A DNA stretch of 64,000 nucleotides from Ostrea edulis (taxonomy: Eukaryota), in NCBI RefSeq assembly GCF_947568905.1, contig NC_079172.1:69874001-69938000 (forward strand), given 5' to 3'. Shown here one piece after another: positions 37,261 through 51,251 of this stretch (the first letter of the stretch is position 1; each line of letters opens with the position of its first letter). The notes under the pieces are model-generated. The model searched no databases, was not told where the DNA came from, and saw nothing but the letters and a program-made list of their open reading frames with translations. A program made the position numbers and the translations under genes.

Positions 37261-40200
37261 TTATTTTTTCACAATTGCAGTCCTTTTCGGAACCACTTTT
37301 TTGCCTGTCTTCTTTACTTTCTTTGTCTTGGTATTGAGGAATCTTCTGTTTTCTGGCGTATAAGAGTTGACGGGTACTTTTTCAATATTGAATGTGACAT
37401 TCTTTCCTTGCACAGACCTAAAGGAAGGTTTTGCTTTAACGGTCTCTGAAAGACAAAGAAAAAATCAATAAGAGTGAACAGCGTGATATGATTTACTACT
37501 TCGGTTAGTTACTTGTAAATATTAAGATGGGTAATATCAGGAATATCTTGTCTGTAAGAAAAAAAAAGTACGTCCCATATGTATTGCGTGATGAAATTGA
37601 AAGTCTTGTTTTCTCTGTGAACTTTGCAGCAATTCATTTTCTCTTTTCTCTTAGATGATTTAACCACTTTGCATAATTATATTTATGTACATCCTTAGTG
37701 ATAAACAAACATTTATTTAAATTTTACAACGGTACATAGATCGAACTGATGATTCATGTCAAATATGCTTAGTACATGCATGAAAGATAAAAACTGGAAT
37801 AAAATTGTTCTTATATAAAAGATTTAAAATGTTACAACAGGGTTCGATTGCTGGTGGCATATAGCTCAGTTGGTAGAGCACCTGACTAGAAATTCATGGG
37901 GCCCGGGTTCGAATCCCGGCCTTGTTCATTGCATTTTCTCCTTGTTGCAGTGGTGCCGTGACCAGAATTCGAACCTGTGTTGTCGCGGCCACATACATGG
38001 CGCTATACATAGGTCTAAATTTGTGTACTTCATCTACAGCTGTTGACGTCTCATGGGTGAAAAATTCTCGACGGAACATAAAACTAGCAACCAAAAAAAG
38101 CACCACACACAATTTACCTGAATTTTGCAGGGTAAGGATTGATTGTATCTTGCTTAACGTCTCTTTCGAGAATTTTTCACTAATATGGATACTTGCAGAG
38201 TAAGGATATGTGAGCAAGAGGTCCCGACAATGAACGGGGGGGGGGGGGGGGGGGGGTATAAACATGATATGGACTTTTTACATACCGTGGCGGAATTCAT
38301 ATCGCTGGTGTGATGATCGAACTTAAAATACCACAACAAGGGGATGGGTTTTGGTTTAAAGTTAAAAGATTTTATGTTTTGTCAACACGGGAGTGTATGT
38401 TGGAGTCATTTGACCAATTGCACCCAAACTTGGCACAAGGTTTCCATTTGTTTATATCATGATCCATGTGGCCACAATGTTACATAGAAATAAAGTGTTT
38501 TAAATAGGGAACATTGCACTACATGTACTTTGGTGAGCGTTCCTCTGGTTTGTAACCCCCACTTTCACCAATACACGTTCAGGAATAAGATGAAAACACC
38601 AGCATTGCCATTCTAACACCGTTTAACATAAAATTCTGGAGGGAGAGGTTATACCTACTGTTAGTTAGGGAGGACTTTTCTCTATTCTTCAATACTGGAG
38701 CTGGTACCAGGTCCGTGAATGGAATCTTGCCTTCAGTCTTTGTACTCACTGGGTTCTCTGATACAGATCAGGAAAAGGAAACAAAGTTTGTAAAACTTAT
38801 TTATTTCAACGCATATTTTTATTTTACAGTGAAAACAAGAGGCCCATGGGCCTTGTTGGTCACCTGAGTACTAGTGAAAAAGTATCGCTACTCCCAAGGG
38901 CTATGGAATCTAGACAAAAATTTCCTGTTCTGAATATCTAAGCTAAATTCTAATGTTCAACACATAATTTCATTTTACAGTGAAAAAAGAGGTATTTGGT
39001 AGGGAATGAGCTTACACTTTTTCAGACTTAGAATGCCATGTTCCTACAAGAGTTCCGCGAAGCGTGACATTTGATCAGCTGTCGGTAGCACAGGGGCTAA
39101 GCCCGTTTTGGGCCCGAACCTTGTGATACCATAGATATAGAAAGGGGTCTAACTCTGACCCAGATAAAAAAAACTAACCACTCGCTTCAAATGCCTAAAA
39201 AATCTTAAATTAGGTATGTTATGCGTAATTTGCCGGTCTCATTGCATAGATTAATGTTTCAAATACTTGCATGCCAAATTTCAAGTCACAGGTTTTTAAA
39301 ATAACAAAGATATACGTCATCGTTCTCTCGATTTCACTTGTTTTTATTTACTAGGACATTTACCGGTCCAGGTCACGGAGTCGTTTCTCGCCTATGACAG
39401 CAGTGAAATTCAGACTAGTGTGGAAGATTTCGGATCTGTCAATTAAAATTTCACATTAATTATAAGCTACTTACTTCCTCATACCTTAATAAAGTTCTCT
39501 ATGTTCGCTGTATCTGGGTCGCTTATTTTACAAGACTCTAACTGCCATTTTGAGAAACGTACTGTAGTATCTGGGGAGTCTTCCCCAGTACGACATGTTT
39601 ATCCCCGGATTGCAGAGGATCAACATCCGGCAGCACGAGGTGATTTCCCGCGGTTATGGTACATGCCAGACGTACAACAAGACCTACCCGAAGTTAGAGA
39701 TCAGCAGCAAGCAGAGCAGTTAAGTCCGCGGGACCCATGTTTTATGTACATACACTGTAATAAATACTATAGATACTTTATTGGCACCCAGCTCGAGGCC
39801 GCGGACTTACCTGGGTGGGTTATTGCATTTTTTTTTTTTTGCTTTCCCCAAGTACGTTGTTAGGTCGTCATATTGGCGGGTAGTGTCAGATTGGGAATTT
39901 TCTTTTTTCTCCTTGGGAATAGATTTCGATTTTAGTGATTAACAGGGATTTTTATTAATTACTGAATCAATTTAGACATTCCTTGATTGCATTTTTTGTG
40001 GATTATTTACTTGTGAGATGGATATGTCTACGTGGGTTGGGCTTGCGCCTTCACCCGGAAACACTTGTGGTCACGCGGAATGTACCCGCGTACTCCCAGG
40101 TATCCCCAGGCGGTGACGAACGTTATTTCACGCCGTCCTTGGCTTCCTGTTTAAGGGAGGGGGAGGTAGGTTAAGGGATGCCACAGGTGGGGAAGTGAGG

Positions 40201-43200
40201 CTTAGTGGCACGCAGATTGGCTCTAGAGAGGGCGACAGGTTTAGTGGCACGCAGTTTGGTTCTAGAGAGGGTGACAGGCTTAGTGGCACGCAGTTTGGCT
40301 CTAGAGAGGGTGACAGGTTTAGTGGCACGCAGTTTGGCTCTAGAGAGGGCGACAGGTTTAGTGGCACGCAGTTTGGCTCTAGAGAGGGTGACAGGCTTAG
40401 TGGCACGCAGTTTGGCTCTAGAGAGGGTGACGGGCTTAGTGGCACGCAGTTTGGCTGTAGAGAGGGTGACAGGTTTAGTGGCATGTAGTTTGGTTCTAGA
40501 GAGGGTGACAGACTTAGTGGCATGCAGTTTGGCTCTAGAGAGGGCGACAGGTTTAGTGGCACGCAGTTTGGCTCTAGGGTGACAGGCTTAGTGGCACGCA
40601 GTTTGACTCTAGAGAGGGTGACAGGCTTAGTGGCACGCAGTTTGGCTCTAGAAAGGGTGACAGGCTTAGTGGCACGCAGTTTGGTTCTAGAGAGGGTGAC
40701 AGGCTTAGTAGGCACGCAGTTTGGCTCTAGAGAGGGCGACAGGTTTAGTGGCACGCAGTTTGGCTCTAGAGAGGGTGACGGGCTTCGTGGCACGCAGTTT
40801 GGCTCTAGAGAGGGTGACAGGTTTAGTGGCATGTAGTTTGGTTCTAGAGAGGATGACGGGCTTAGTGACACGCAGTTTGGCTCTAGAGAGGATGACAGGT
40901 TTAGTGGCATGCAGTTTGGCTCCAGGGAAGGTGACCGATTTCCTGGCACGCAGTTTGGCCCTGATGAAGGATATATCTTAGATTGGGATATGCAACGTAG
41001 GTGTGACTTCCCAGGGAATTTAATGGGATTAGATCCGCCCAAGAAAGGGTCTGGACATGACACCCCAGGGTTTAATGATTGGGATAGGTGGGAGGAGGAT
41101 TTTTGTCTCCTGGTGGGGGTTCAGTTATTCCTAAGGTCCCAGTGAGGCCTACTTCAGTGAAGGGGGGTGGTCATGTACCCAGCTCTGGGAGCCTCCCGGA
41201 ATATCATACCCCTTCTCTGCATTCCTACACTCCAGTGTCAAGGAGCTCAGCCCCACACCCTCATTCATGGGTTGATGATCAGGCCCTAGGCCAGCTTAGT
41301 CAGGGTTTGCCCCAGATGGGCTTGGGTTCACGCTTGCAGCACCCCACTCCTGGACCGTATTCCCCAGTTGCCCCATTTTCGGAGCCAGGGATTACCTACG
41401 GGAATTACCAGTCCCCACAGCCCAGCCAGGGCTATGATCTGCTTACAGGGTCCCCAGTCTCTCATGCCTACCCATCCTATGTGCAAGACCCTTGGGTTGG
41501 GGGGAATGCCCCCCCCCCCCCCACCCACACCCAGCCTTTGATACCTCCCATGCCTGGCGGTTACGCTAGCACACATATGCCCTACCCTACCATGATGACT
41601 CCTCCCTATCAACAGCAGGGGCCCTTCACCTACCCTGGCATCACGGCTTGTGGGTTGGGGGATGAGGGGGGTAGCGTAGCGCACATTCAACCCCAGTTAG
41701 GTGAACCAGAACGACACACCATTCTCTGGGCATTATGCCCAGGGACTAGCTCCAGCATCTCGCACCATGTACCAGGTCCCCCAGTACTCTTGTGTGGGGG
41801 AGCAGTCGGTGGGCTTCAGTAGAAACGTACCCCAGTACAAGGATTTGCGGTACAATGGAAATTCTAGCTGGAAGTCCTTCCTTCACAAGTTTATTCGCCT
41901 GACCCACAGGCAACAGTGGACTGAGATGGAACAACACGATCAGTTTTGCTTTTCATTGGAGGGGACAGCAAGCGACTACTACACCCTGTTGATGGAAACA
42001 GACCACAGTCTCTCTTTGGCCGACATCATTGGGCGGTTTGAGAAACGTTTTGGGTCATCTGCACCAGGTTTCACGCATCATTTGAACTTTCAGTCAGCAT
42101 CACAGGATGTGGGCGAGTCATTGCGACATTGGGCTGACAGGGTGCTTACCCTGGCTACCCAGGCTTTCCCGTCTGTGCCGGATTTTCATGTGTATGCCAT
42201 CCCCCGGCTGTGCTTCGGTGCTGAGGACAGAGACGCAGGACTATATGCCATGGACAGCCAGCCCAAGTCAGCTGAGGAAGCAGTCGACCGAATGCAGTAC
42301 TATCAACATTCACGGCAGATGAAGTCATCCAAGCCCATGAGGGATGTGAGGCAGGTAGTTCAGGTTGAAGCTCCTAATCCTGACAAGGAGATGCGTCAGC
42401 GCCTTGAGGAGTTGGAGAAGGAAATCCGAGGGCGGACCCTCTCTCGGAGACCTTCATCGCCATCATCAAACGGCAACCGAAAGCCAGCAGGCTGCTTCAA
42501 ATGTGGAGCCATGGGACATTTTAAGCGGGAATGCCCGGAATGGCGGGGGAAAACTGAGTCGAACCAGGGCCAGGGGACCAAGGTCAAGCCTAGGGACGGT
42601 CAAGACGCACAACCGTGTTCATCAGAACCAAGGGGGCGGGGAGCCAAGACCCGCCAGCCACAGTTTAGTGTAGGGCTTATACAGGGGGAGGTCAGGAAGT
42701 TGACACCGGAGTGCTCCCCAGTTAGGCCAGGGCCGTGTGATGCTCGCACGGGGACAATTCGGTTTGCAGGACACAGGCATGCGCCGCTCCAGGAAGGGCA
42801 CACTCCAAGTGCGGTTCAGGGAGATACCCGAGGAGGAGGAATCCGAGGACTGGGTCATAGGGTGGGAGGAGGACAAATACGAGCCCTCTCCCAGGGATAT
42901 ATTGTCGGGATTCAGGCTCCCTGAGGATATCGTGGTGCTGGAACTGCCCGGGTTTGGGGCAGAGAACCAGGGGGATGGGGAGGATTTTTCGGAGGACTTG
43001 CCGGATCTGGAGCCCTCGCCCATTCAGGAGGAGCAGGTAGGCGCGGACCCTGCGTCAGAGCCTAGCGAGTGCCCGGAGCCAGTTAAGGCGAAGGCTCAAC
43101 CCAAGGAGGAATGTGGGCTGGGGGTGGTCAGTGGCCAAGCGGAGAACGGGACTGCGGATATGCCACTCCGGCATGCGGGAGAATCTCACGAAGACTCGCC

Positions 43201-46200
43201 TTTGCCAATAGGGCAGATACACCTAACCACCGGATTCATGGTCCAAATGGTAGTCCAGGGAGTAAGACTACAGGCAGTGGTAGACACTGGGGCGGAGGTG
43301 AGTGTGTTGTCCACCCGGGTCTACGAGGAGCTCGACCCCAAGCCTCCCATCAAGCAGCATGTGACCTTGGTCCAGGCAGGGGAAAATGCCAGGTTGAGGG
43401 GCTTCATCATTGGCCCTGTGGCAGTTCGCCTTGGAGACACGGAACATAATGTCGACCTGTATGTTACCCCCCTGCAGGACCAAATGCTGCTAGGTATGGA
43501 GTTTCTCCATCAGCAGAAGGCTCACATGGAGCATGGCACGATGACCTTGGGAGAGGAGAAGGTCCCTATGACGTTCAGACGCCCAGTAGGGGGACAGGAG
43601 GCCCAGGTTTCAGTAACGAAGTCTATCCGGGTCCCAGCTGCTTCAGTCGTCCTATGTCCTTGTCGTTTTCATAAGGAGTTGGAAGACTTTAGTTAGCCCT
43701 TAGATCAAGCAGACCTCGGACGTCTTATTGGTGCCGCACACTTATGCTAGGGAGAGCACGTCGGTGACCAGCATTGTCAAAATCTCAGATGAGGGAGTGT
43801 CTATCTCCGATGGCAGTGCGATAGGATCAGCCTTGGAGGCCGAACCATGGGTGCTGGCACCTAGCTTAGTCGTTGAGAATGTGTACAGTGTGGACCCCCA
43901 CACTGAGGCAGGGACTAAGCTCAGCACATTTACAGCAAGAGTTGATGTTGCTCCCGTAGCTTGCCCTGGAACTTGGTCGAATTCCAAGAAGGCCATATTG
44001 GATGGTGGGGGAGATTTCCCCCTCGAGCTGACTAACATTGCTGAGGAAATTAGTGTGGTAGAAGCCCCAGATGTTGGCCTTGCTCATTGTGCGCCAGGTG
44101 AAGGTGTTCTGGATGGTTACAGTGGTTTAGTTAGCGAGGCGTCTTGGAACTATGTCTCCCGAGAACTCCTCGGGTTCCCAGGTTGGACTCGAGGGGCAGA
44201 GTTTGACCTCAAGACGGATCTTGTGGGACATGACTCATTCAGGACCCAAGTCCGACAGTTCAGGGGCACCAGGTTGCCTTGGCCGCCACCTGGATTTAGA
44301 GCTGGTAGAAGGATCTATTGATCCTTTTCAGCTAGGGATGTGTAACCCAGGGCTCGCCCTGGTCCACACCGGTTGGGAGTAGATTAGTCCCCGTCAGTTT
44401 TCTCCGGAGCATTTACCCGGACCTTTCCTGCCGGAACCTTTTCCGGCGTCCTCGGATAGTTCATCCGAGGGGGCGTGTCGTGCCCACCTTGACCATTGGT
44501 TGGACCCGTTTCTCCGTCCTTCAGAGAAAACGGGGGGAGTGCAGTATCTGGGGAGTCTTCCCCAGTACGACTTGTTTATCCCCGGATTGCAGAGGATCAA
44601 CATCCGGCAGCACGAGGTGATTTCCCGCGGTTATGGTACATGCCAGACGTACAACAAGACCTACCCGAAGTTAAGAGATCAGCAACAAGCAGAGCAGTGA
44701 AGTCCGCGGGACCCATGTTTTATGTACATACACTGTAATAAATACTATAGATACTTTAGTACTAAAGACCCGAAATATCTAAAACTTGAAAGAAGGGGAG
44801 AATGGGTAAAAATAATCTAAATGAAATGAACAAAAACAAAAAATTAAGGAAGCCAAAAAATAATGTTCATTTTCCTTGTCTAGGTGCAATATCACAAGAA
44901 TAATGTTTTGATCAACTTTAAGGTATTTGAGATTTTAAGTCTATCGGGTATTTAGTGCTTTCATTAAAATAGCAGATCTTGTCAACAGTTGATGCTGCTG
45001 AGGAAAAATAAGTCGTGTAACGCCTACACGAAGAACATTATTAAAATATGAGAAAGTAAGTAGCGTATAATTAATGTGAAATTTTAATTGACAGGTTCGA
45101 AATTTTCCATATTAGTCTGAATTTCGCTGCTGTCATAGGCGAGAAACGACTCCATGACCTGGACCGGTAAATGTCCTAGTAAAAATAAATAAGTGAAATC
45201 GAGAGAACGATGACGTATATCTTTGTTATTTTAAGAACCTGCGACTTGAAATGTGGCATGCAATTAGTTAAAACATTAATCTATGCAAGAAGACCGGCAA
45301 ATTACACATAGCTTACCTAATTTAAGATTTTTTAGGCATTTGAAGCGAGTGGTTAGTTGTTTTTATCTGGGTCAAAGTTAGACCCCTTTCTATATTTATG
45401 GTATCGCAGGGTACGGGCTTAGTCCCTTTGGTCGGTAGCGTTACACAGTTGCGTTACTATATCCCCACCAATTCTGTTATAAGGGAATAATGACCGTGTA
45501 AGCAGAGGACTAGCATTGACTATACCTTTCTTTAGTAAGACAAGAGGACTAGCATTGACTATACCTTTCTTTAGTAAGACTGGGGACTAGCATTGACTAT
45601 ACTTCTCTTTAGTAAGACTGGGGACTAGCATTGACTATACCTTTCTTTAGTAAGACAGAGGAAATTCGATAGTTGTACACACGTTGCTTTCTCTGGGTAG
45701 AAGATGTGAAATCTCTGTAACCTATAACAACGAAACAACACGTCATTAACTTCTTATGCAAGAAGACAGTAAATTATAATGATCAGGCTAATGGCTCGGC
45801 GTGTACCTGTGCAATTACAGTCAAATTCTGTAAGTCCGGCTATTGGTGTAGATCGCGTGACCTTGTGAAATCTGACCAGCGCAGTGTCGCACTCTAGCAC
45901 GTGTTTGATGAGAGCCTGGGGAGACCTGTATCGCTCGCTGCTGTCCTTGAAGAGGGCGTAGGCCGCGTGGCAGGGAGGGTCACTATAATCTGATATCTTA
46001 ACGTCTATCTCATCCCGAATGTCCTCGTAATTATCCAGAATTGCATTCCGTAAGCAATCTGTAATGAATAAAACCATATTACTAAATAGCTGTTTATCCA
46101 AATATGGATACTTACCAATTACTTTGTCCGTCGGTCGTTCTAGTTACTATATAACACAGCATAACAGTATTAAGCCAGTGGATACCTCTGCATTGAGTAG

Positions 46201-48934
46201 ACGTGCTTGTCGATGGGAAGAGTTGTTGCAAAATATAACTTTCGTTTAATTTTTTCAACTCGTCCACAAACACTTCCAAAGCAGGCTTTCCCTTCCCTTG
46301 CAGAAGTCGGAGGAATTCGTTTGCCCTGTTTCGTCGGATATTTTGTCCTTTAATCAAATCAACCTCCTCCTGAGAAAATAGGCCCTCTTTTCGGAACCGT
46401 GGTAGAAATCGGTACGGTTCTAACTCATCTTCCAGCATAGCCCTGTTGTCTGCCAGAACCTCCATCAGGCAACTTCTGTCGATTTCCCAGAGTTCCCCTG
46501 TAGTAAAAAGAGAATTTCTTTTTTCAGGATTGAAATATGAAAATAAATATATGTATACATGTATAGCAATTTTCAGTCAGTGTTGCTGCAACATTTACAC
46601 AATGTACAGCTGTAACAAAATATGTATTATAGAGTCACAGAAACTATCGACAAATCCACTGGTTATCTTTGTATTATAGAATATCAGAAACCCTCGACAA
46701 ATACACTGGTGATTTGTGTATTATAGAATGTCAGAGACCCTCGACAAATCCACTGCTTATGTGTGTATTATAGAATGTCAGAGACCCTCGACAAATCCAC
46801 TGGTTATCTTTGTATTATAGAATATCAGAAACCCTCGACAAATCCACTGCTTATGTATGTATTATAGAATATCAGAAACCCTTAACAAATCCACTGCTTA
46901 TGTGTGTATTATAGAATGTCAGAAACCCTCGACAAATCCACTGCTTATGTATGTATTATAGAATATCAGAAACCCTTAACAAATCCACTGCTTATGTGTG
47001 TATTATAGAATGTCAGAGACCCTCGACAAATCCACTGGTTATGGTCTCTACTTGAAGTTGTAGCGTCCCGGCAGGCAGCAGTCTGTTCATCTCTGGATCT
47101 TGAAGAACCTTCTGGATGAACATTTTCAACTGGTTTTTGTCCAGAATTTCTGCTGCATTGTCTGTTAAAGCCTTTACATACAGTACTATCGATCCTGCTT
47201 GACAATCCTGTATGCTCATGCGCATGAATCTTGTTGCCAATTCGTCTATTTCGGAATCCATGTTGTGGATTCTGCGCACTAGTACGTTCTCTAGTTCCTG
47301 TATCTTCCGTCTCTGTTGATTTCTGAATCTGAAAATGATCACGTGATCGCCACTGTCATCATCGTATCTCACTGCAAGGCAAAATGAAATTGTTTTAGGA
47401 ATTTTTCGACGATTCAAGTTTATTACGAATTAATTATGAAAGAAAATGTGTGCCTTACTGTCAGCGTCAACGACCTTCACCAGATGTTCGTCTTGAAAAA
47501 AGACCCCAACCCGTTTCTGACCACTGTCTACAAAGACGTAAAATTGACTAAAGCATACAGTCTGTGTAAAAATTTGAAGGATGTTGACTGATTCTACATT
47601 GTACTTCCTATTAACTCTCCGTGGACTTACGATTGGATGTGACTTACCTTTTGTTTTGGTTCGGGGTTTGTTCTTCAGACGCTCAATGATGGAAACTCCG
47701 GGTAATACATTGCGAACGATCTCGACAGCACAGAGAAAGCAATTCAAAATGACGTCATCCTTCTTCGTAATTTTGTTAAGCAGAACTCTGGCTTGCCTCA
47801 ATTTTGAAACCTCATTTTGGACTTCATCATGATCATAAATGGAGAACACGTCCTCTCGTAGTTCTTGTAGTATAAAGTCGGCTGTGGGGACGGGCTCCAT
47901 GCTTCTAGACAGGAAGGCGTGCTCCGCTCTGATATGGTCCACCGTTATTTCTCTCTGATAAGCCGACCAATCTGTTAAACGCAATGTACAATTTGATTTC
48001 AAGATCCGAAAGTTTATGACACAATTTTAAAAGATTGATGCTTGTTGTTTTACGTCCTGTCGAGAATTTTCAAACATATTGAGACATCACCAGTTGTACA
48101 GATGAAGTACCACAAATTTAGACCTATGCTTAGCGCGTAGCTGAACGTGCCGACGCCTGTGGCGACATGGGACCTCTGTTCTCAAGGTCATACCAGAAAG
48201 ACTCGTTATTCTCACGTCTACGGTAAATCCCGAGCGGTTGGCCAAGGAGCAATTAACTACCTACGTTTACGCCTTAGGTTTTACGTGACCATGGCACGAG
48301 AGGGGATCAAAACTGACGACCCCCCCCCCCCCCCCCCCCGACACGAAGCGAACGCTTTGCCATTGAGCTACCGCGACCGGTTTGAAAGATTGACAAATTA
48401 TCAAGTGAAAGAATACCTTCCTTTGTCCTGCAGTCTCTCGTCTGTTGGAATGTATCCACGATGTAAGCGTATCCGCATTCTGGTGCTTGTAAAATATTGA
48501 CAAACTTGTTACAGGCTGTCCTTCCGTACCGAAGTAGAAGTTTCAGCAGTGCGTCTATCTGAACATGTCTTGGTTTAGGACTTCCGCAGATATCCTCTAG
48601 ATCACGAATAGAAAGGACATCTTCTTGGTGCAGAAAATGGTAAATCCAACGGACTGAAAGTTCGTCTTTTAGGAAAATATAATTTCGTCGCACAATGACT
48701 TCCTCTAAGGAAAAAAAAGATGATTTATGAAGGTAAATTAACACAGTCAAGCATAAATTCTGTCTAAAGTTGGTTAGGTGCAAGTGTTCACGTCAATTTT
48801 TATTTTTACAGTATATCTAGTTAAACTCACCGGGTAGAGGTAATGGTTTTCCTCCTTCATTTTGAAATGAAACTTGTTCTTCTTCGTCGTAAGAATCATC
48901 TGATAAAGATTCAATTTTCACACATCGACAATGT
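37261..48934 (-). CDS. Multi-CARD death-fold protein with a TRADD-N-like module (5' end unresolved)
   Basis: Minus-strand exons: 48934-48831 (acidic), 48704-48417 (CARD), 47971-47648 (CARD), 47371-47021 (GSIVLYV, TRADD-N-like), 46497-46186 (CARD), 46139-46116, 46058-45807 (CARD-like), 45721-45641, 38757-38659, possibly 37551-37513, and 37445-37261 (Lys-rich, TAA). All internal exons after the first are stop-free, phase 1-1 and multiples of 3. A candidate start exon is 50859-50757 (MEDLSDEDIL...), but it is not linked. Confidence 0.7.
37830..37993 (+). mobile_element. tRNA-containing LTR-like unit followed by an antisense tRNA-His 3' half (Helenus-like TRIM remnant)
   Basis: TG...TTGCA unit 37830-37949 with A box TAGCTCAGTTGG and B box GGTTCGAATCC, then TGGTGCCGTGACCAGAATTCGAACC... 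at 37951. A second partial copy lies on - at ~53965-54065. Confidence 0.55.
39563..44758 (+). mobile_element. Ty3/Gypsy-like LTR retroelement, gag + protease only (no RT/RH/IN)
   Basis: LTRs 39563-39780 and 44540-44758 differ at 5 positions. TSD GTAC. PBS-like TGGCACCCAGC at 39782. PPT AGAGAAAACGGGGGGAG at 44523-44539. Gag capsid region and CCHC knuckle CFKCGAMGHFKREC; protease VDTGAEVS. Confidence 0.9.
40200..40945 (+). repeat. 39-bp tandem repeat (~19 copies) in the Gypsy 5' gag region
   Basis: Unit GACAGGTTTAGTGGCACGCAGTTTGGCTCTAGAGAGGGT encodes the 13-aa unit (L/F)SGTQFGSREGDR. Confidence 0.95.
45507..45660 (-). repeat. 38-39-bp tandem repeat x4 spanning a predicted donor site
   Basis: Minus-strand unit GTCTTACTAAAGAAAG|GTATAGTCAATGCTAGTCC. 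Confidence 0.9.
46624..47043 (-). repeat. 47-bp tandem repeat x~9 spanning a predicted donor site
   Basis: Minus-strand unit ATAACCAGTGGATTTGTCGAGG|GT(C/T)TCTGACATTCTATAATACACAC. Confidence 0.9.
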
Positions 48935-48975
48935 CTAATTTATTTCCAAAGCGCAAAAGTAGCTTTCACAAGTCA

Positions 48976-49960
48976 TTAAAGGGAAAGACAACCCAAAACA
49001 TTTTTACATGATAAATGATAGGATTAATCATATGATATATAAATATTTACCATACAATTTTGTTGATATATGGCCAAAATAAGCTTCAGTACTAATTTTA
49101 AAACGTCAAAAATTGAAATTCCCGCGATCTATAGAGACTGCCATGATGTGTAACTCTTTTGTATTCAATACCACAAAAATCAATATTTTGACGTCACACC
49201 GTTTGTTCCGGTTTTGATGAGATTCTAAGATCTTTGCTTGGGTTCAGGACCCCCCCCCCCCCCTCCTCCGAATAAGCTACATGAGTTGATTTATTTATTT
49301 TTTTCTTGAGCATATTTCTAATGCATGTCAACGTCTTGCATACCCATAAAGTCTAACATAATTCAAAATAAGCCCCATTTTTAAAAAAAAAAATACCCTC
49401 ACTGGTTACTATAACAAAACTTATATTAACCAGTGAGGGTATTTTTTTTTAAAGGGCTTATTTTGAATTACATGTATTTTGGACTTTATGGGTATGCAAG
49501 ACGTTGTTGACATGCATTAGAAATATTTTCAACAAAAAAATAATTAAATCAACTCATGTAGCTTATTCGGAGGGGAGGGGAGCCTGAACCCAAGCACCTG
49601 TGAGATCATCAAAGATGTGCATGTGGTAGATCTTACGAATAAATAGGTTTTCTCGAAATTCCCAACCCAGTCATTTGAAAAAGAAAAGACTACGTAAACT
49701 GTGGATCCATCATTTGCATAATGACAAGTTGAGGTTCAAGACATTTGTATGAAGAAATGTTTACCGTCTGCCTTGTTTGCGACTCGACTGTACGTCTTCT
49801 TTTCTCAATTTCTTCTTGCGAAAGAACGGGCTCAAATCTATACGGCTCCAAACTTAACTGTTCGTGACTTGTTACATTTACATTGCTGCTGATGGGATAA
49901 ACCGGAATAGACGGTGTGACGTCATAAATTAAATTTCAATGGACACTCTCTTAGCGGTGA
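48976..49960. mobile_element. Kolobok-like transposon remnant containing a foldback insertion
   Basis: TTAA|AGGG start, subterminal inverted TGACGTCACACCGT motifs (~49190 and ~49915), and a minus-strand EPYRFEP remnant reminiscent of Kolobok accessory proteins. The right end was not found. Confidence 0.4.
49235..49596. repeat. Foldback palindrome, ~170-bp arms
   Basis: CTTGGGTTCAGG...ATACCCTCACTGGTTA, then a loop of ~20 nt, then TAACCAGTGAGGGTAT...CCTGAACCCAAG. Confidence 0.9.
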
Positions 49961-51251
49961 GTAATTTAAAATACATGATAGATTAATATTGATTTAATTG
50001 TTAAGCAAAGGATTTTTGTTGTTAAAGACTGTCAATTACGATATCAGTAAGTGATACTTTATTCATAAAAGCAACTATGTGTTGACAGGATTCCGATTCT
50101 GTCATCGTCGTATTTTCTTCAGTAACTGAACGCAGGACCAGATGATGACATAAAGGATCTCCAGACACTGTCACAATAACTCTGATTTGAATACACATTT
50201 GTTGGCATTACGACACGAGTCATAAGTGTTAATGTTTTGTTACGTTTTCGTTTAGATTAAGTATCATTCATGCTTTTCAACATCAAGTATGCGAATCAAG
50301 TGGAAAGAAATGACTGCAAGATTTCTCGATCAGGATTCTGCCGAAAAATCGAACGGGAAACTTAAAAGTATGCGTTAAGGCGCAACGTTCATTTTTGCAT
50401 TTCTACGTCAAATTTTCCGGTTATTGTTTTGATCAACCGATAAAATTTTAGTTATTTTTAAAGTCATCTGTAGCTTTGACATGGTATGAGTATAGTGTAA
50501 TTCGGTGTTTATTTGTACTGCTATTACCTGAGTCGGTGTCGATATCAGGGACTCCAATTACTAATACTTCCTGTAGACTTTGATTCTCACCACGTTCCTC
50601 CTCTAAATACAACATTTACCTTACTAGAGTGTTAAAATCAGATTCAAATCCACGGTATATTATTGTAGGCATATACTAATTTATTTGTAAATTATGGTCA
50701 CATATTCAATTTTGTGATAAGGGTATAGGGTTTCTTCCACCTTTTCTTAGCCTTACCGTAAAATCCGCTGGAATGGGTAAATCCCCGCCTAGACCCAATG
50801 AAGGAGGGTACTTTCTCGTTATCCAAATGTAAAATATCTTCATCGGATAAATCTTCCATGATATTATATCATGGTTATAATTTCTTCCAGTGCAGGTACA
50901 TGTAATATTTGTGGAGTTTTAATTTACAGTGCGTCATTTGATTCCCGAGAACACGCACTTTTACAATCATTTAAAAATCATTGATTTAGTATATTGTTTA
51001 GAACAATAGCACGTTGTCAGTAGATCTGCTTACTTTCAGTAGATATGTTCACGCGAGGATAGTTTCATGTAAAAGGTTTAAAGCGATAGATTGTCTATGT
51101 ACATAGGTCCGCAATATCTTTATATAAAAAGGACTCAAAAATTCAAAGACCTTTCATTTTGTATTTTTATTCTGCACGTTGTTAACAATTTGTTGAACGG
51201 ACAACATTTATTGTATTTTGGTTCGTCCTTTACTCTCTAAAGTGTTTTTCA

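Follow-up and report, generated by a model that had tools for sequence, protein, structure and literature searches.

LOC125658542 of the oyster Ostrea edulis is predicted to encode a conserved three-CARD adaptor with a probable, diverged TRADD-N-type central domain

The locus described here lies in a stretch of 64,000 nucleotides of the oyster Ostrea edulis (NCBI RefSeq assembly GCF_947568905.1, contig NC_079172.1, positions 69,874,001 to 69,938,000 of the forward strand), hereafter the window, in whose numbering all positions are given. On its minus strand, from 50859 down to 37261, runs a gene that RefSeq carries as LOC125658542, "uncharacterized protein". We identify the gene of the window with LOC125658542 because both RefSeq proteins, isoforms X1 (XP_048745778.2, 735 aa) and X2 (XP_056006441.1, 678 aa), map onto it at 100% identity, coding exon by coding exon. 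There are 12 coding exons, all with open reading frames, and all 11 introns between them are in phase 1. Each of the ten internal coding exons has a length that is a multiple of three, phase 1-1 borders and canonical AG/GT splice sites, in agreement with the phase 1-1 exon modules described in a first-pass annotation of the locus. The exon lengths add up to 2208 nt, that is, 735 codons plus the stop of X1. LOC125658542 is a real, already annotated gene and its product is predicted to be a non-enzymatic adaptor of cell-death or immune signalling. Its coding exons are, in the order of transcription:

50757 to 50859, minus strand: exon 1, with the ATG at 50859-50857 and the start of the acidic N-terminus; X2 residues 1-34 at 100% identity; donor gtaagg.
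50528 to 50602, minus strand: exon 2, 75 nt, phase 1-1, acidic linker; X2 residues 35-59 exactly; AG/GT borders.
48831 to 48899, minus strand: exon 3, 69 nt, phase 1-1, acidic; X2 residues 60-82 exactly; acceptor ttatcag, donor gtgagt.
48417 to 48704, minus strand: CARD1 exon, 288 nt, phase 1-1; PF00619 at 25.3-26.8 bits; hhalign 96.5% against CARD3.
47648 to 47971, minus strand: CARD2 exon, 324 nt, phase 1-1; PF00619 at 29.8-31.3 bits; conserved in Crassostrea contig L001.
47459 to 47527, minus strand: mini-exon, 69 nt, phase 1-1, encoding VGVFFQDEHLVKVVD; X2 residues 287-309 exactly.
47021 to 47371, minus strand: central exon, 351 nt, phase 1-1; RRM-like domain, probably a diverged TRADD-N, with an invariant Gly-Ser at the modelled β2-β3 turn.
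46186 to 46497, minus strand: CARD3 exon, 312 nt, phase 1-1; PF00619 at 44.3-44.8 bits, the most canonical CARD.
45807 to 46058, minus strand: exon F, 252 nt, phase 1-1; 84 aa, highly conserved, matching no Pfam or PDB entry.
45641 to 45721, minus strand: exon G, 81 nt, phase 1-1, basic; X2 residues 616-641 exactly; kept in L001 and all orthologs.
38655 to 38757, minus strand: exon H, with two donors separated by 4 nt; its last base is 38659 (X1, 99 nt) or 38655 (X2).
37261 to 37445, minus strand: last coding exon, Lys-rich tail of X1; X1 residues 676-735 exactly; stop at 37263-37261; acceptor tttcag.

The 3′ limit of 37261 given by the first-pass annotation is the last base of the stop codon, and the Lys-rich tail that it described is the C-terminus of X1. 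Its 5′ limit of 48934 fell short, since the ATG lies about 1.9 kb further, at 50859, and exon 3 starts at 48899. The domain exons and the tail had been recognised, while exons 1, 2 and H were missing and the mini-exon was unlisted, and the expected product of about 685 aa has to be replaced by one of 735 aa (X1) or 678 aa (X2). The protein consists, from end to end, of an acidic N-terminus, CARD1, CARD2, a beta segment, the central RRM-like domain, CARD3, the modules encoded by exons F and G, and the Lys-rich tail. The N-terminus has 22 Asp plus Glu in 82 residues and is poorly conserved; of the 120 residues of the tail segment (616-735), 31 are Lys or Arg. Both look like regulatory or localisation regions, to judge from their composition. 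The two isoforms part at the donors of exon H: GTAGGT at 38658 keeps the frame and gives X1, whereas GTATAA at 38654 shifts it, so that X2 ends about six bases into the last exon (stop at 37438-37436) and the Lys-rich tail is lost. This 4-nt alternative donor could be a switch that removes the tail.

CARDs are the one family that domain libraries recognise in this protein. Applying the gathering cut-off of Pfam family PF00619 (23.9 bits) to each copy separately, we found that the translations of the three exons, scanned one by one, all exceed it (25.3, 29.8 and 44.3 bits for CARD1, CARD2 and CARD3), which bears out the three CARD exons first proposed. In the annotated full-length protein, Pfam finds three CARD stretches (E 1.3e-24) and nothing else. 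The CARD3 profile matches the solved CARDs of BCL10, CARD8, NOD1, cIAP1 and Apaf-1 with E values of 5e-6 to 2e-4, and those of a set that includes caspase-9 with E values of 5e-6 to 1e-2, over an alignment of about 80 residues; the similarity of CARD1 and CARD2 to solved CARDs is marginal. Compared with each other by hhalign, CARD1 and CARD3 reach a probability of 96.5%, a value that serves below as the control for exon F. Because only CARDs are recognised and the largest remaining globular stretch measures 84 residues, it is very unlikely that the protein contains an enzymatic or a classical sensor domain. The earlier description of a product with no enzymatic or sensor domain thus holds, and it holds for a single transcribed locus.

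How widely is the gene conserved? Word-based searching with the central exon as query retrieved open reading frames (ORFs) 72-82% identical to it in other oysters. A hidden Markov model (HMM) of the same exon, run against 1.84 billion representative proteins, gave six matches, one of which was spurious: the 3406-aa protein P0009, a bacterial repeat protein with about 7 bits per repeat, was discarded. Among the genuine matches, the 633-aa protein XP_061194349.1 of Saccostrea echinata, used in turn as a query, led to one ortholog per oyster species, in S. echinata, S. cucullata, Crassostrea gigas/angulata and C. virginica (LOC111100879). Both the HMM and the ortholog searches detected the family solely in oysters, as expected from the lineage-specific character first attributed to it. 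In the Crassostrea genomic contig L001, the CARD2, central, CARD3, F and G exons follow one another in the same order with their frames open, and the introns cannot be aligned to those of the window. Over 325 codons, the window and L001 differ with a pN of 0.18 and a pS of 0.71, the proportions of nonsynonymous and synonymous differences, which gives a ratio of the corresponding rates (dN/dS) of about 0.09, dS being saturated; the exons are therefore under purifying selection. The mini-exon segment VGVFFQDEHLVKVVD is conserved across all orthologs. Across seven orthologs, mean pairwise identity is highest in exon F (0.75), followed by the central domain (0.73) and the CARDs (0.62-0.67), and it falls to 0.25 and 0.35 at the two termini.

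Crassostrea also provides the evidence for transcription. A complete ORF of 685-689 aa is found on many intronless contigs about 2.2 kb long (for example L008), whereas genomic contigs of the same genus carry introns, and the gene is therefore transcribed and spliced there. One ortholog per species, the dN/dS of about 0.09 and these transcript contigs together indicate that LOC125658542 is functional. In four O. edulis sequencing runs that contain the locus, among which no RNA run was found, the contigs over 45500-51000 cover the introns and show no exon-boundary joints. These four runs behave as genomic DNA contigs and are silent on expression. The RefSeq isoform models of O. edulis, for their part, presumably rest on transcript data.

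The introns of the gene hold a large insertion, lying as follows:

39563 to 44758, plus strand: long terminal repeat (LTR) retroelement of about 5.2 kb, antisense to the gene, inside the 6.9-kb G-H intron; LTRs at 39563-39780 and 44540-44758.

With 98-99% identity between its two LTRs, the insertion is young; they enclose ORFs of gag-like (zinc knuckle, PNMA-like) and aspartyl-protease type as well as a 39-bp satellite of 19.6 copies at 40198-40959. An element of this size, with its satellite, between exons G and H, together with tandem arrays that copy two splice donors and a search for O. edulis runs with the locus that yielded no RNA run, could suggest that LOC125658542 is a pseudogene disrupted by a retroelement, or that its exons belong to separate or untranscribed loci, as the first-pass annotation had allowed. 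We consider this highly improbable. The element is antisense and wholly intronic and leaves the reading frame untouched, all frames are open and the splice sites canonical, and RefSeq models two isoforms, X1 and X2, that map across the exons and span the G-H intron. Moreover, selection at a dN/dS of about 0.09, the exon order kept in Crassostrea genomic DNA and the full-length intronless Crassostrea transcripts speak against both versions.

Within its 64 kb, the window holds no paralog of LOC125658542. Elsewhere, positions 81-1584 of the Logan contig L004 (SRR25445067) encode a central domain (31% identical), a CARD (31 bits in Pfam) and an F-like segment; L004 is probably from O. edulis, since it comes from the same whole-genome shotgun study as contigs identical to the window, and it looks like a distant paralog and a possible counterpart of C. 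virginica LOC111100011. On the same kind of evidence, P0010/P0012 was rejected as a homolog from another species: its contig shares a whole-genome shotgun study with contigs 99.6-99.9% identical to the window, and it is most likely an O. edulis paralog. Likewise, a link through V-ATPase subunit F to isoform X3 of C. virginica LOC111100011 was dismissed, its motif not being found in the window.

We turn to the central domain, which was first described as TRADD-N-like. The exon itself (47371-47021), with its motif AGSIVLYVKAL, is real and conserved. TRADD-N is an RRM-like two-layer alpha+beta sandwich of β-α-β-β-α-β topology, with a four-stranded sheet and two kinked helices (Kaur et al. 2021, PMC8195603). 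Its hallmark is a strongly conserved motif of a tiny residue plus Ser, usually Gly-Ser, in the β2-β3 turn, and in structure 1F3V this Ser contacts TRAF2 (PMC8195603). From two alignments of the oyster domain, A1 with 7 sequences and A2 with 11, one AlphaFold model each was made. Both models show a strand, a long broken helix, a two-strand hairpin, a broken helix and a strand, that is, the order β-α-β-β-α-β, with a mean predicted local distance difference test score (pLDDT) of only 54-57. Gly81-Ser82 of A2 is invariant in 11 of the 11 sequences, two homologs at 21-31% identity included, and the model places it between the two central strands, hence at the β2-β3 turn. The surroundings of this Gly-Ser, with a hydrophobic strand and an NG.L..h pattern after it, were likened by eye to the DEDD2-clade rows of Kaur et al. 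(2021). Finally, the domain adjoins CARDs in every case: it lies between CARD2 and CARD3 here, and a CARD follows it in L004 and in another contig, L007. We favour assigning the central domain to the TRADD-N superfamily, as a diverged member whose pattern comes nearest to that of the DEDD2 clade; this assignment is probable rather than proven. The Gly-Ser turn and, at the low confidence of the models, the topology speak for the earlier label, although the profile and structure searches gave no link to TRADD.

The searches produced no statistical link specific to TRADD-N. No Pfam family is above threshold for the central domain; in an hmmscan of 11 members, the TRADD_N family (PF09034) and the NCOA6-type family (PF13820) were absent at E<=10. 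A profile search of the PDB sequences with the domain returned no TRADD and no sequence-similar solved structure. In two Foldseek and two VIA searches with these low-confidence models, all fold matches were generic ferredoxin-, RRM- or ACT-like ones, and TRADD-N was not in the top 50 rows of any search, an absence that carries no weight at this model confidence. Given the pLDDT of 54-57, the fold itself is only moderately supported. Lastly, six of the 11 members have sub-threshold matches to the TMEM16 N-terminal domain, an alpha-beta plait (13-20 bits against a cut-off of 27). These observations could also come from a protein that is the same real CARD adaptor and whose central domain is an independent ferredoxin-like or alpha-beta plait module, restricted to oysters and not homologous to TRADD-N, with a role, for example, in dimerisation or in the binding of a small ligand, as in ACT-like domains. 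This alternative deserves consideration, but on balance we find it unlikely. An independent module would need to have acquired an invariant Gly-Ser exactly at the β2-β3 turn, which is the defining motif of TRADD-N, and to stand obligately beside death-fold domains, as TRADD-N does in TRADD, in DEDD2 and in the invertebrate expansions. Nor do the negative searches decide for it, for the unification of the TRADD-N clades itself took iterative and profile-profile searches, in which ACT-like matches were the typical background (PMC8195603). A diverged TRADD-N therefore stays our preferred assignment.

Exon F poses a different problem. The first-pass annotation had taken it for a fourth, degenerate CARD, and with such a CARD the layout would read CARD-CARD-TRADDN-CARD-CARD. 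The published C. virginica layout does place a CARD at the position of exon F (Kaur et al. 2021), L007 carries a second CARD-like ORF after the first, downstream of the central domain, and the best, non-significant, hhalign alignment sets exon F against the stretch of CARD3 that spans helices 4-5. Against these, the hhalign probability of exon F is 0.13% with CARD3 and 0.61% with CARD2 of its own gene, where the CARD1-CARD3 control gives 96.5%; exon F has no Pfam match at E<=10 in six members and no PDB match, and it shows no similarity to the second ORF of L007. A decaying copy is ruled out, since exon F has the highest pairwise identity of all regions and is thus anything but degenerate. A fourth, diverged CARD is in our opinion doubtful, and we describe exon F as a conserved module of its own.

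Exon G has a ...QRK...YN.RIS.VL.K... pattern, with N-[FY]-R-I-S-S, that is invariant across all oyster orthologs. Its N-[FY]-R-I-S part bears what we take to be a loose likeness to the pLxIS phospho-docking motif of MAVS, STING and TRIF. It would be surprising, and we hold it improbable, if the N-[FY]-R-I-S-S of exon G proved to be a phospho-docking motif of the pLxIS kind, or if the central domain, module F or both proved to be oyster-restricted adaptor or sensor folds unrelated to TRADD-N and CARD. Were the phospho-docking idea true, the protein would be a MAVS-like hub that links CARD filaments with molluscan IRF or TRAF signalling.

What might such a protein do? In death-fold signalling, CARDs act by homotypic assembly. 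The profile of CARD3 is closest to the filament-forming or platform CARDs of BCL10, CARD8, NOD1 and Apaf-1. If the central domain is TRADD-N-like, the LOC125658542 protein would be a scaffold: its CARDs may enter or seed homotypic CARD-CARD assemblies whose other members would be caspases, sensors or further adaptors that bear CARDs, and the exposed sheet of the central domain near the Gly-Ser turn may recruit a second partner, as TRADD-N does with the MATH domain of TRAF2. A death-fold platform would in this way be coupled to TRAF-type or other effectors and to downstream ubiquitin, NF-kB-type or apoptotic signalling. DEDD2 is nucleolar and, by likeness to it, the Lys-rich tail could serve nuclear targeting. 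We infer this scaffold mechanism, as well as the roles of tail and N-terminus, from analogy.

Apart from the retroelement, the introns show other peculiarities. At two exon ends, a tandem array begins within the exon; the unit lengths of the arrays, 47 and 38 bp, are not multiples of three. The array at 46623-47043 repeats nine times a 47-bp unit made of the last 23 nt or so of the central exon plus its donor, with GG|GT kept in 8 units; the one at 45498-45662 repeats four times a 38-bp unit that takes in the last part of exon G and its donor, three of the copies being intact. In Crassostrea L001, the intron after the central exon is short and lacks the 47-bp array. In all four DNA runs, the contig depth of the intronic stretches 48076-48330 and 48996-50100 exceeds that of the flanking exons by factors of hundreds to thousands, and from this depth we take the two stretches for high-copy interspersed repeats. 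One of the two contains a poly-G run, and in the second an ORF with the motif LEPYRFEP (49935-49693) is probably transposon-derived.

The same four DNA runs reveal some polymorphism. An A>C change at 47432, present in four of four, removes an intronic in-frame stop and thereby accounts for the read-through ORF P0007. A G>C change at 47957, in one run, replaces Gln184 of CARD2 by Glu, and a C>T change at 47142 is synonymous. Over 50300-50750, two runs have in common a diverged haplotype that covers exons 1 and 2 and has an 8-bp deletion in intron 1.

Why may this gene be of interest? Oysters have no adaptive immunity and suffer mass mortalities from ostreid herpesvirus 1 (OsHV-1), Vibrio and Bonamia. 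Their decisions on cell death and antiviral defence are believed to be wired through expanded repertoires of death-fold and TRADD-N proteins. To our knowledge, almost no protein of this repertoire has been studied. A single copy, conservation in Ostrea, Saccostrea and Crassostrea and strong purifying selection point to a fixed core adaptor and not to a member of a fast-evolving expansion, which sets LOC125658542 apart from most of the repertoire and recommends it as a tractable starting point. The gain is incremental: corrected limits and isoforms, together with two conserved modules, the central domain and F, that domain libraries do not recognise.

The architecture had at first been considered unlike that of any named gene. 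Nevertheless, the gene was already a RefSeq model and the class to which it belongs is known, as its domain layout has been catalogued in oysters by Kaur et al. (2021), according to whom TRADD-N proteins have undergone lineage-specific expansion in bivalves (PMC8195603). In the available part of Figure 4-source data 1 of that study, the oyster layouts include three CARDs, TRADDN, three CARDs, SAM and an AIG GTPase, as well as CARD+CARD+TRADDN+LRRs, and several CARD+TRADDN proteins are found in other molluscs. The available part of the tables, mollusc section included, contains none of the accessions of the LOC125658542 ortholog group, and in the collection of papers that was searched for the gene identifiers of all orthologs, none mentions them. 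Against this background, we regard LOC125658542 as a conserved, single-copy, Ostreidae-wide adaptor, probably of CARD/TRADD-N type, that the published survey, as far as its available part extends, and Pfam have not captured.

The nearest catalogued relative in layout is LOC111100011 of C. virginica, an oyster of the same animal family. Like LOC125658542, it combines two CARDs, a small alpha+beta domain with a Gly-Ser turn, a further CARD and an additional module; its product has 765-766 aa, compared with 735 aa here, and neither protein has an enzymatic domain. It is nonetheless a separate gene, the C. virginica ortholog being LOC111100879. In LOC125658542, the module that follows CARD3 is not detectably a CARD, which departs from the catalogued layout, and the central-domain HMM did not retrieve the catalogued oyster proteins, so that the relationship to them is at best distant.

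Among vertebrate proteins, TRADD (TRADD-N plus Death domain) and DEDD2/FLAME-3 (DED plus TRADD-N) associate a death fold with an RRM-like domain bearing a tiny-residue-Ser turn, as LOC125658542 probably does, and they have the purely adaptor role that we propose for LOC125658542. They differ in using a DD or a DED where the oyster protein has three CARDs, they have no counterparts of the mini-exon, F and G modules, and no search links the central domain to TRADD. BCL10, CARD8, NOD1, Apaf-1 and caspase-9, proteins made of or led by a CARD, are akin to LOC125658542 through the matches of its CARD3 profile, and homotypic CARD assembly would be its expected mode of action. In those proteins, however, a single CARD is combined with effector, NTPase or Ser/Thr-rich regions, whereas LOC125658542 carries three CARDs split by a domain that does not have a death fold.

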